A stretch of DNA of 63,626 bases, filler included, from Reticulomyxa filosa (lineage: Eukaryota > Protista > Foraminifera), in the NCBI GenBank assembly GCA_000512085.1. It is 19 parts of 19 records of this genome, joined end to end, with 100 filler letters (N's around TTAATTAATTAA, not from the genome) between each part and the next. Parts side by side here need not be neighbours in the genome. Positions count along the whole stretch, not along the records: positions 36,140 to 39,428 come from ASPP01003086.1; positions 39,529 to 46,499 come from ASPP01010737.1; 17 more parts are not named here. One strand, given 5' to 3'. The notes below the pieces were generated by a model. That model was not told where the DNA came from, searched no databases, and worked only from the letters and a program-made list of their open reading frames with translations. The position numbers and the translations under genes were made by a program. Below, one piece after another: positions 36,140 through 40,036 of this stretch (its first letter is position 1; each line of letters begins with the position of its first letter).

Positions 36140-36179
<40 letters not shown>

Positions 36180-36268
36180 GTATAATATTTCGCATTATTT
36201 TTTTTGTTGAAAGTATTTGTGTGTCATCTTCTTTTTTTTTTATTTTCATTTGTGGTGTATCTCAACAG

Positions 36269-36899
36269 ATTTCGAAATTTGGAAGAGCACGTGCGGGTGC
36301 ACACTGGAGAAAGACCATACGTGTGCACAATCTGTGAAAAGGGGTTTAAGCAGCAACACAGGTTTTCTTTTTTGTGTGAAACTGTCTGACAAACACATAG
36401 AGTGACTTTCAAACAAGTGTGGTACTGTCAATATTCTTTTTTTTTTTGGGGGGGTATAAAAAAAAGTTTGAACGACCACAACAAGGTACATACTGGAGAA
36501 AAACCTTTTGAGTGCGAAATATGTTCCAAAAAAGTATGTGTCTTACTTTTCCAAAAATCTTTACTTTTTTTTTTTCAATTGATTGGTAATTATTTTAAAA
36601 AATGAGACAAAGGGGAGAGGGAAACACAAAAAAAATTGTTGAGGATAATGTATTCTCTTGAATAGTTTTCGTTGAAACATAACATGAAAGTCCATAAAAA
36701 ACTCCATTACAGTTAAGTGAAAACACCAGTGTTGAACATTGGAAAGGACTTTGTTCCAAGATTTGTGTGTATGCGTATCTTTGATTGAAAACTCACTGAA
36801 GACAAGCCACAGTTTAAATGCGATCGTTGTAGCAAAGTGTTACGATCAAAACATGGTTTGCAGGGACACCAACAACGACTACACGGATTGATCTCGTAG
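36269..36899 (+). CDS. C2H2 zinc-finger protein, 3' exons
   Basis: [39 protein letters not shown] and [24 protein letters not shown]. Confidence 0.88.
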
Positions 36900-37899
36900 A
36901 CGTGTGAAAAAAATTTTTCCTTTATTTTTTTAATTTTTTGTATCCAACATTTAATCTTTTTTTTTTTGTTTATTTGTTTTCTTTGGGTTATTTCTCAATG
37001 TACAAACGCAAGCAACATCTTCATTTCTTCTTTTTTTCTCTGTCAATGGGTTTCTTCCTTTTTTTTTCTTTCAGTGGGATCGTATGCCTAATTTCCATTG
37101 ATAGAAAATAAAGTTTCTTTTTTTTGGGGTTGTGACTTTTTTTTTGTATCTTTTAAGCAATAAATGCCGATCGGAAATGATGGTGATTGTTGCATTTTGT
37201 TTGAGTGTGACCTTGTGTTTGTATGTTTGTTTTCTCTAGAGAAAACTTAATTGTATCTGTCGCCCATTTTAAACAAGTTTGTAAATGCATTTATATGCTT
37301 TGTACTTTTCGAGCGATATTACTTTTGTTTTTATAATCTATCACTTTTTAATTACTTCATTTTTACTTAATATCCTTGTGTAGACAATCGCCTTGAATAC
37401 TTTGTATCACAGAATGCTTTCGCTTCTTCTTGAAACAATCAAGTAGATCGCTGCAAGTAACAATTTTACAATGACCGTGCTTTAATTTTTGATATTGCTT
37501 TGTTTTCCAATTAATCTTGCACGATATTCTTTTTTTTTAATAAAACTAATTAGCGTGTATTAATTTTAGAGTCACATTGTTCGTAGTAGCATGAATTACC
37601 TGAGGGTTAAATCAAACAACCTGAAGCAAAATAAAAATATTGCATTCTTTGGTGCTTATCTAAATAAAATATATAGTCACAAGCTGTTGCTAGTGGCCCC
37701 ATTCATACGTTAATTGGAATATAGTATTTTACTACCTGTAACAACACCATGGAGAATCATGCTTCCAATGGTAAATATGAAAACATGCAAAGAACAATGA
37801 AGTTGAAAAAAAATCAAAAACAATTTGGCTATAATTTTCTAATTGCAACTTTTTGTACAAGCACTAGAAAATATTTGTCTAATGTGAAAAAGAAAGTTA

Positions 37900-38128
37900 T
37901 GTAGGAGAAGCTCCTATAAAGTAAAAGGGGCTGATGAGCCCCCGGTGGGTTAAACTTTCCCAACTCTTCACACAACCTTTGTGTTTTCCTTTTACTCTTT
38001 CGTTATCGTTTTGCCATTTCTTCTTTATTTATTTAAATTACTTTGAGTTATTGAAAATCTTCTCGAAAGAGTTTATCACCTTTCGTATTACATTTAGTGC
38101 AGTCTCTTCCGCAGCAACAGCTCTTACA
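37900..38128 (+). mobile_element. 229-bp TGT...ACA element (solo-LTR-like), copy 3, complete with 4-bp TSD
   Basis: Ends TGTAGGAG / CTCTTACA (7/8 inverted match), flanked by GTTA at 37896-37899 and 38129-38132. Internal motifs GGGTTAAAC and CCTTTCGTATTACA. Confidence 0.75.
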
Positions 38129-38593
38129 GTTATTAAAAAAGAGTGATTCGGTTATGGTTACATCATTAATATCCATTTACTTTTTCAATGCAATGCATTG
38201 CTTGTATAACATCTATTCAATGAAATATTTATTTTGCTGTTTTTTGTTCACAGCTCATGATAAGCCTGTTAGCTTGATAAGCAAGTTTATCAATTTGAGA
38301 TAGCATATTTAGAAACAAAGATACAAAGCTATTTTTTTTATTTAAAGTACTATATTATGCAGAAAAACTAAACATGTAAATACGCATCTTATGAAAATTA
38401 TATTTTACAAAAATTCAGATCAATTTTTAGTGTTTGTTTTGTATTTTTTATGTAATTGCTTTTTTGTATTTTCTAAGAATCAATACTTTGTTTTTTGTAG
38501 GCCCCTTAACATTTATGCTGTTTTCTTCTTTGAATGTTTTAATGACTGTTTACTTGGTCATGGGATGAATTTGAAAGTTATTATTATGAGTTA

Positions 38594-38970
38594 GACCTGG
38601 TAAAAAATCCAACTATGTTATTGACAAACGCAATCTTCAAAGGATTGGATCCTGAGGGAACTGGTGTGGTTTCTTCACCATTGTTGTTGGCGCTGTTGGA
38701 AGACATAAATTTACGAATGAAGCCAGTTATCGATAAAATTGAATCTCAGCCAGAAATGAGGTAAGCTTAATAATTATCTTTTACAAAGGAGAGAAGATGA
38801 AGATAGTATAAATGGAATATATTGACTGCTTCAAATTAAATAAAACATATAGCTTTGGTGAAGTTCATAAAGGATTGCAGAAAGCGTTTGATGATGGATT
38901 TGATATGTCCGATTTGTTGTCTATTGATTATATTGTGAAATCTACAAAAAAAAAGAAGAAAATTTTATAA
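38594..38970 (+). CDS. Small gene or fragment with an EF-hand-like loop
   Basis: Two GC-richer exons (…AIFKGLDPEGTGVVSS…EM|SFGEVHKGLQKAFDDG…) are joined by a GTAAG...ATAG intron. The start is unclear. Confidence 0.35.
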
Positions 38971-39149
38971 ATTTTTTTTTAATCTTCTGATTGTGAATGT
39001 GGCACATTTTGCTGATATGTTTTTTTTTTTTCTTTTCATGTAACTTTAACTTGACAAATAAGTTTGTGTTCTCTCAATCTAATTCAACGACGTCAAAAGC
39101 TCATTTACTTTGATATACAGTATGACTAAATAAATAAATAAAAATGTTA

Positions 39150-39339
39150 TGGTCGCAGCTGGGAGTCGAACCCAGGTCCCCAGTACAGCCACCACGCTAA
39201 ACCAGGCTATATCCTAGCTTCTGTGAAGACTACACAGACGTCTCTAGTAATTACCGGACTAGGCTGCGTCCAGGCATCATCCATAGTAACTACCAGTTGG
39301 CCGACGAACGGATATAGAACACCTTTATTTCCCTGCGGC
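39150..39339 (-). ncRNA. ~190-nt tRNA-like structured RNA gene candidate (Pol III type)
   Basis: Perfect T-arm CTGGG-TTCGACT-CCCAG. Acceptor-like pairing of 5' GCCGCAG with 3' CTGCGAC (6/7), ending ...GACCA and followed by T5. Several internal helices; GC-rich island in AT-rich DNA. Confidence 0.7.
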
Positions 39340-40036
39340 TGAAAAAAAAAATTTTCGGAACTTGACTACCATCTTGTTTTGCATGTCTATCACACTTTAT
39401 CTATTATTAGTTAAATGTTAAATTCTCANNNNNNNNNNNNNNNNNNNNNNNNNNNNNNNNNNNNNNNNNNNNTTAATTAATTAANNNNNNNNNNNNNNNN
39501 NNNNNNNNNNNNNNNNNNNNNNNNNNNNAAAAAAGGGGGGAGGGAAGAGTAAAAAAAAAAATGTGTTTGTATTATCAAATTTTACAGGCGAAGTGTGCCC
39601 TTCCGGATGGAAAAAGGGATCCAAAACAGTTAAGCTTTTGTGAAACAAATAAAATTGTTTTCTGAAGCAACAAAAGCATTGTTGGTATGTACTTTATTGA
39701 ATTTTCAGATCATCCCTGACCCAGAAAAGAAACTTAACTTCTTTTCCGACAAGCGAGGATCAAAGTAGATAAAAAGCCCCTTTTTATTGTGCATACATGG
39801 AAGCAAATGTTATTGGTTGATGTTTGAATTAAATGCGAACTTTGGCCATAGCATTTTTTTTTTTAAGCTTAAGCATAAATCTGGCATTTTTTAGCCAAAA
39901 GTAGCCTCAAATTGTTCTCATTATTGACCACATCAAAAATGTAAATCGTAGTTCTTTTTTTTGAAGTTAAATAATAAACAAAAAAAGCAAACCATACACA
40001 ACCCAATTGGAGACAAACTGGCATAAAAAAAAAATT

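Follow-up and report, generated by a model that had tools for sequence, protein, structure and literature searches.

A GC-rich island closed by a tRNA-like acceptor stem and T-arm in nuclear DNA of the foraminifer Reticulomyxa filosa: a candidate non-decoding tRNA mimic

Introduction

The tRNA mimics known to be encoded in eukaryotic nuclei are few (PMC10424219). By function, a tRNA-like structure is defined through its interaction with RNase P, RNase Z, the CCA enzyme, a synthetase or eEF1A (PMC10424219). The mascRNA/menRNA transcripts are substrates of RNase P, RNase Z and CCA addition and are not aminoacylated (PMC10424219). In trypanosomes, which are protists, the tRNA-like sRNA-85/sRNA-76 is encoded in the nucleus and serves in SRP instead of decoding (PMC2800229). 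In tRNA mimics, the acceptor/T stack and the G18/G19 elbow are read by RNase P, RNase Z and the CCA enzyme (PMC10424219, 10.1101/312249). YrlA RNAs are circularly permuted, a loop-closed acceptor stem being followed by the D arm (10.1101/312249). In vault RNAs, a variable central domain is flanked by internal A and B boxes; the ends are paired and the length is 80-140 nt (PMC7916137). A B box and a T run are type 2 signals of RNA polymerase III (Pol III), and the spacing between A and B boxes is variable (PMC7954030).

The element studied here lies in one piece (ASPP01003086.1, positions 36140-39428) of the 63 626-nt stretch of Reticulomyxa filosa DNA that was analysed, hereafter the window. 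All coordinates are window positions unless another sequence is named. Foraminiferan non-coding RNAs are almost unstudied, and to our knowledge no tmRNA-like architecture has been described in a eukaryotic nucleus. A first-pass annotation had read the element as a tRNA acceptor stem and T-arm closing a large multi-helix insert. The element is real and unexplained: if expressed, it would work like a tRNA mimic with a tmRNA-like layout, and it is a member of no family tested.

Results

The element is on the minus strand, 180 nt past two kinase exons and 89 nt from the edge of its piece. The piece is AT-rich eukaryotic DNA (GC 32%). It carries a C2H2 zinc-finger gene at window 36200-36900 (plus strand) with several short exons and small AT-rich introns, and a 28-nt tandem duplication lies by this gene at window 37024-37078. 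Relatives of the gene models were sought exon by exon. The closest relatives of the two kinase exons were R. filosa CAMK-family kinases (71-75% identity); over the CAMK-like exons as a whole (38555-38970, plus strand), identity to R. filosa and soil-transcript relatives was 70-78%. Only the last two exons of the kinase gene are present (38555-38760 and about 38853-38970, plus strand), and no kinase similarity was found upstream of them within the piece. The gene beside the element looks like an orphan fragment, or the locus like a rearranged or misassembled one. The neighbouring zinc-finger and kinase exons and their relatives bear out the eukaryotic nuclear, foraminiferan setting that had been proposed.

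The GC content of the element is 53%, vs. 25-26% on both flanks, and its TA observed/expected ratio is 1.5, vs. 0.5-0.7 in the host. The best two-changepoint fit of GC content (maximum likelihood) delimited an island at 39151-39341, which therefore begins and ends on the two acceptor strands described below. A T10-CAG at 39339-39351 (minus strand) abuts the element and resembles a 3′ splice site, its G being acceptor position 1. The frame that follows it is open for 43 codons, meets a stop and then runs for 19 codons to a stop at the other edge of the island.

Every motif named in the first-pass annotation was found where it had been placed. The whole element, a 189-nt GC island made of a tRNA-like closure and an insert, spans 39151-39339 on the minus strand, as do all the parts described from here on. 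The 5′ strand of the acceptor stem (positions 1-7) is at 39333-39339; it has a C2-A71 mismatch and no G3-U70, and pairs 3-7 have probabilities of 0.82-0.85. In the predicted fold, the 3′ strand and discriminator C73 are at 39151-39158. In a rival register, the stem has 5 bp, residue 73 is A (A73) and a CCA is encoded that ends at 39150. A 3-nt junction and a perfect T-arm follow at 39159-39178, with a B box matching 10/10 of the consensus at 39172-39162. The T-stem is paired at 5/5 positions and the acceptor stem at 6/7, and this closure made up 78% of the predicted ensemble. Shuffling the 3.3-kb piece yields on average 0.007 perfect 5-bp T-arms with a TTCRANY loop, and shuffling the element yields 5e-5. 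A 6/7 acceptor partner anywhere upstream is unremarkable in shuffles (p 0.21); a partner within 3 nt of the edge of the GC island has p 0.011. The invariant positions of the T-arm are uneroded despite the AT-rich region. The claim that a tRNA acceptor and T-arm close a discrete unit was thus upheld.

A T5 run, the candidate Pol III terminator, is at 39140-39144, 7 nt downstream of the element, and a (TTTA)4 repeat follows it. A T5 within 10 nt is expected by chance in 6-11% of cases. The element has no internal T4, a weak signal shared by 86% of shuffles. At the 5′ side, the sequence itself shows a 15-nt D-loop-like linker at 39318-39332, without U8, in which a GG at 39323-39322 has the canonical G18/G19 spacing. 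An optional 4-bp stem in this linker has p about 0.25. The candidate signals of a Pol III type 2 gene (consensus from PMC7954030) are a 10/10 B box, a T5 7 nt downstream and, at the expected place, a weak A box (4/7) about 160 nt from the B box. The D-loop-like words listed earlier are not significant: a 6/7 A-box match was found in 84% of shuffles. A second strand complementary to the acceptor at 6/7 positions, missed in the first pass, is in the loop of a long hairpin (39264-39270; p 0.02 for two partners). The ensemble disfavours it (P 0.0008, vs. 0.78 for the closure).

The bases of the T-arm and 3′ acceptor strand also read, at 39150-39173 on the same strand, as eight codons that match a motif of the adjacent kinase family (p about 0.003). 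The T-arm could accordingly be a coding accident, made of a 27-nt inverted scrap of kinase exon and an unrelated GC-rich stretch, or of a decayed terminal exon running from the splice-acceptor-like T10-CAG (39351-39339) to a stop at 39149-39147. Seven of the eight residues fit the conserved motif of a family whose last two exons are 180 nt off, 22 of 27 nt are identical in one kinase paralog (L003), the match has p 0.002-0.006 with the close-homolog matrix PAM30, and the island edges also fall on the splice-acceptor-like site and an in-frame stop. However, the match has p 0.04-0.27 with BLOSUM62 and 0.03 and 0.69 at the nucleotide level, neither flank of the 27 nt resembles the kinase, and extending the match requires a 1-nt gap. 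When translated, the end of a natural tRNA-His yields almost this peptide; as this tRNA was picked by an element-derived pattern, it establishes a possibility only. The island, moreover, is not coding-like. Its coding log-likelihood (-38) is at the lowest value seen among 105 held-out R. filosa coding windows, it contains 7 TAG triplets vs. a maximum of 3 in those windows, and no protein relatives were found for its 43-codon frame. With its internal stop, the whole island was rejected as a host-type exon. A coding origin would also leave the acceptor pairing unexplained. It is very improbable in our judgement, and the overlap with the kinase motif is most likely a coincidence.

The insert had been described as folding extensively, which was an overstatement. 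The minimum free energy of the whole element was no better than that of shuffles (z = -0.70); the fold was weaker than that of 93% of 60 natural tRNAs and of 97% of 30 group I segments. About 10% of shuffles contained an 8-bp Watson-Crick helix, about as many contained a helix of 12 bp, and 1.4% had both. Of the inner multi-helix architecture drawn in the first pass, the long hairpin at 39244-39296 (11-12 bp + 4 bp) is robust, whereas the complete fold accounts for only about 14% of the ensemble. This hairpin (pair probabilities 0.94-0.99; z -3.1) is the only inner element that is locally significant, and it is common to both competing folds. Its cap had been given as GGAC/GTCC; the predicted cap pairs 39282-39279 with 39259-39256 instead. 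In one fold, a 111-nt central domain at 39207-39317 (local z -2.9) is closed by a perfect 8-bp long-range helix (39317-39310/39214-39207; probability 0.31). A 6-bp hairpin at 39220-39238 (p 0.77) has a 7-nt loop without U33 and purine 37. The variable-arm-like hairpin of the first pass is a 28-nt irregular hairpin before the T-arm, at 39179-39206 (p 0.33). The rival fold (about 48% of the ensemble, P 0.48) combines an 8-bp hairpin at 39199-39220 (p 0.46-0.66), a short D-like stem and a long helix by the T-arm. The rival hairpin is mutually exclusive with the long-range helix and the variable-arm-like hairpin.

The element was compared with known RNA classes. ARAGORN and Rfam gave no family-level match on it, the best Rfam matches being T-arm fragments. 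The best Rfam score was that of mascRNA (19.6 bits for a cut-off of 42.5, with the acceptor at 5/7); mascRNA and menRNA are about 60-nt cloverleaves that follow a triple helix, and the element does not fit this class. The Rfam tmRNA score was 10-12 bits for a cut-off of 47 and came from the T-arm only. ARAGORN in tmRNA mode found none, pair 3-70 is C-G, so that the alanine identity G3-U70 is missing, and there is no intact tag frame: the sole frame to end in Ala-Ala-stop is interrupted by a TGA five codons before that end. For YrlA, the order of parts is unpermuted and model RF02553 had no match on the window, although it detects the YrlA-like locus L017. The Y-RNA likeness suggested in the first pass is unsupported, since YrlA is circularly permuted and the element is not. 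No vault RNA match was found on the element in Rfam, protist vault RNAs being divergent. A tRNA-Sec was rejected because its 13-bp stack needs the disfavoured second acceptor strand (P 0.0008), a CTTCA word has no stem, and the discriminator is A or C where G73 is needed (PMC5330540). A tandem duplication of two acceptor-led halves was rejected as 45% of shuffles score as well. The defining words of snRNAs, SRP, RNase P/MRP, telomerase template, C/D and H/ACA snoRNAs, SECIS, viral 3′ tRNA-like structures and a retrotransposon primer-binding site were looked for by eye only and are missing.

A standard tRNA, or one with an intron at 37/38, was rejected: there is no U8, D-stem or anticodon arm (Y32, U33, R37), and ARAGORN called none. 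For other introns, one or two segments were removed exhaustively, starting from either acceptor strand, and the products were compared with those of shuffled inserts. The best one-intron models scored 9.0 and 7.5, values reached by 22% and 44% of shuffles. The best two-intron models scored 13 and 12 (about 25-30% of shuffles; natural median 15.5). ARAGORN, Rfam and these removal tests bear out the earlier statement that the element is not a standard, intron-containing or Sec tRNA, nor a tmRNA. A working tRNA with unusual splicing could still be envisaged, with three or more introns or as a split or permuted gene whose partner is past the piece edge. Precedents exist in C. merolae and nucleomorphs (PMC3978253, PMC13578239), the succession acceptor, GG and long-range helix has canonical spacing, and relaxed ARAGORN gives a sub-threshold call of 95 points. 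But in 21 kb of R. filosa DNA these relaxed settings also produce 13 spurious gene calls, the one- and two-intron models are within shuffle range, U8 is lacking, and there is no second acceptor partner downstream, unlike in permuted genes. We hold this explanation to be very unlikely.

Another possibility is that the insert is what is left of a group I (IC) intron core, now dead, within or next to tRNA exons; tRNA genes do harbour group I introns. Compared with IC1 introns, a Q-like word at 39270-39256 (10.6 bits, p 0.003) and an S-like word at 39216-39203 (11.6 bits, p 0.01) are in the right order (chain p below 0.001), and the mean pairwise score is above that of shuffles (p 0.003). This resemblance was noticed after the fact. 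The P, P5a and R words are not significant, and the chain reaches 23 bits vs. 72-96 in real introns. Two profile HMMs were negative, the covariance model had no match on the insert, and Rfam gave none. The excess disappears under stricter gaps, the reverse strand scores equally high, there is no room for P3 and P8, and the P4- and P7-like pairings have P 2e-7 and 0.004. As only the Q-like and S-like words score, a group I intron (IC1, IC3) was rejected, and a remnant of one seems slightly less probable still than unusual splicing.

Homologs of the element were searched in viral, prokaryotic and metagenome collections, which contain little foraminiferan DNA, and none was found. The exact 3′ 26-mer had 0 matches in 185 579 prokaryotic genomes and the metagenome set. 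Looser patterns retrieved only ordinary tRNAs (His, Glu, Thr, Met, Cys, Gly), YrlA RNAs and chance matches, and none of the sequences retrieved from these three types of collection had similarity to the insert. In BLAST searches of phages and plasmids, the insert had no match, and the sole similarity was a 21-nt identity between the T-arm and that of a phage tmRNA. A recent insert of foreign DNA (virus, symbiont or prey) bringing its own tRNA-like RNA would account for a composition unlike the host, for a junction, T-arm and ACCA end that resemble the 3′ end of tmRNA, and for the 21-nt identity to the phage tmRNA. It has to face the absence of the 26-mer from the prokaryotic and metagenome sets, the lack of insert matches in phages and plasmids, and edges that fall exactly on the acceptor strands; its probability is among the lowest that we assign.

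Several loci met during these searches are reported for themselves. In L001 (4047-4110, plus strand), a tRNA-like gene with a weak anticodon arm, uncalled by ARAGORN, has 24 of 25 bases in common with the 3′ end of the element. In metagenome contig Ga0209498_1013553 (L040, 4035-4374, plus strand), two tandem tRNA-like units each have a structured insert of ~50 nt in the anticodon arm and a long variable arm. They are identical from the D arm onward, differ in the D region and are unrelated in sequence to the element; they are another tRNA shell around an insert. L017 (3069-3350, minus strand), from a MAG labelled Heliobacteriaceae, contains two tandem YrlA-like RNAs (54 and 29 bits, below the Rfam cut-off), and a similar sequence is in L029. 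Viral contigs L184, L193, L196, L197, L250 and L255 have compact IC3-type group I introns followed by tRNA 3′ exons, including Leu- and Thr-like ones. In the crAss-like phage NC_055901 (L002, 439-829), the annotated tmRNA has its T-arm near the feature start, which suggests a permuted (two-piece) gene.

Repeat signatures were also looked for. There is no target-site duplication or tail on the sense strand of the element; the longest direct repeats flanking it are of 6 nt and are of low complexity or offset. The usual layout of a tRNA-derived SINE was not recognised, on this ground and because the B box is at the 3′ end, not in a 5′ head. A search of very low power, covering the piece and 21 kb of R. 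filosa contigs (two kinase paralogs), revealed no second copy. The element may nevertheless be a non-functional tRNA-derived chimera, in which a tRNA with a short variable loop and a His-, Glu- or Thr-like 3′ end was broken by insertion or recombination, or a young copy of a repeat. A tRNA-derived SINE or fusion was also the alternative offered in the first pass, and it keeps a fair probability. Such a sequence may still bind TFIIIC while making no useful RNA. The 3′ 30 nt of the element are closely like ordinary tRNA-His, Glu and Thr ends (retrieved by pattern). The weak overall fold, the acceptor mismatch, the (TTTA)4 downstream, the rearranged neighbourhood and the lack of homologs outside the R. 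filosa genome in the collections searched all agree with this origin, as does the 8-bp inverted repeat that bounds the central domain as in a small DNA element. Conversely, a B box at the 3′ end is the reverse of a SINE head, target-site duplication and second copy (the latter in the low-power search above) are lacking, and removing one or two segments restores a tRNA no better than in shuffles. We consider a relic of this kind doubtful, although far more credible than the other alternatives above.

Discussion

The observations describe a discrete 189-nt non-coding unit in which an acceptor helix stacks on a perfect T-arm; the B box is intact, a GG has the G18/G19 spacing, and a T5 lies downstream. 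We tentatively favour the reading of this unit as a tRNA-derived, Pol III-type gene for a non-decoding tRNA mimic, which does not reach an even chance and is nearly tied with the non-functional chimera or repeat. It is favoured by a T-arm and B box far beyond chance, by GC-island edges that are the acceptor strands (p 0.011), by a closure that dominates the ensemble, by the non-coding character of the island, by uneroded T-arm invariants and by the absence of target-site duplication and tail. It is weakened by the lack of a homolog in the collections searched, by a whole-element z (-0.7) below that of most natural structured RNAs, by two competing inner folds, by the 4/7 A box, missing U8 and acceptor mismatch, and by the kinase-motif coincidence. 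The region, moreover, looks rearranged because the neighbouring kinase gene is an orphan fragment. All inferences on the element are drawn from one sequence with a weak inner fold.

If the element is such a gene, TFIIIC would bind the B box and Pol III would make a precursor of ~200 nt ending at the T run. The elbow formed by T-loop and GG, together with the 12-bp acceptor/T stack, would then allow end trimming by RNase P and RNase Z as well as capping by the CCA enzyme. The RNA is probably not aminoacylated and probably does not decode, because it lacks both a usable anticodon loop and G3-U70 and has a C2-A71 mismatch. The tRNA shell would most likely act as a clamp for processing and stability, offering the insert, and above all its long hairpin, to a partner that may be protein or RNA. 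This role would be like that of the tRNA-like domain that frames tmRNA, or of trypanosome sRNA-85 in SRP. An upstream host transcript, as for mascRNA, is conceivable, only 89 nt being visible upstream.

A more ambitious claim is that the element makes an expressed and conserved foraminiferan nuclear RNA, in which RNase P, RNase Z and the CCA enzyme process an unpermuted acceptor/T-arm that encloses a functional domain of 155 nt. We judge this unlikely, and less probable than either the mimic gene or the relic. Known eukaryotic tRNA mimics are tRNA-sized; a tRNA shell around a large domain, if true, would extend the tmRNA design to the eukaryotic nucleus and would be the first non-standard Pol III RNA for foraminifera. 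Should the element instead be a relic or repeat copy, it would be a curiosity of an ordinary sort, or at best would represent a new repeat family whose layout is inverted.

Among known systems, mascRNA/menRNA (RF01684) is like the element in being a eukaryotic nuclear tRNA mimic and gave its best Rfam score. It is about 60 nt long, has reduced arms and is cut from a Pol II lncRNA, whereas the element has a 155-nt insert. Trypanosome sRNA-85/sRNA-76, compared by description, is tRNA-sized, unlike the element. YrlA (RF02553) shares the T-arm and acceptor mimicry, and the YrlA RNA of L017 has a very similar T-arm/acceptor 3′ strand; the element differs by its open acceptor, with nothing tRNA-like after it. 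Unlike vault RNA, it has no recognisable vault A box, and its B box is in a true T-arm on a 7-bp stem. Intron-bearing, multi-intron and group I intron-containing tRNAs also have a long structured insert between tRNA ends, but neither a D arm or anticodon arm recoverable by splicing nor a group I core is present here. With tRNA-Sec, the likeness is that the second acceptor strand of the element allows an 8/5 or 9/4 stack. The element departs from tmRNA (RF00023; permuted form RF04321) by the lack of G3-U70, of a 5′ G run and of an intact tag frame, by its nuclear eukaryotic locus and by its length (189 nt vs. 300-400). In both, an acceptor stem and T-arm close a large insert (closure P 0.78 in the element), the D-loop is stemless and contains GG, and a GAC junction precedes the T-arm; in the rival fold of the element, a long helix abuts this junction in the manner of tmRNA P2.
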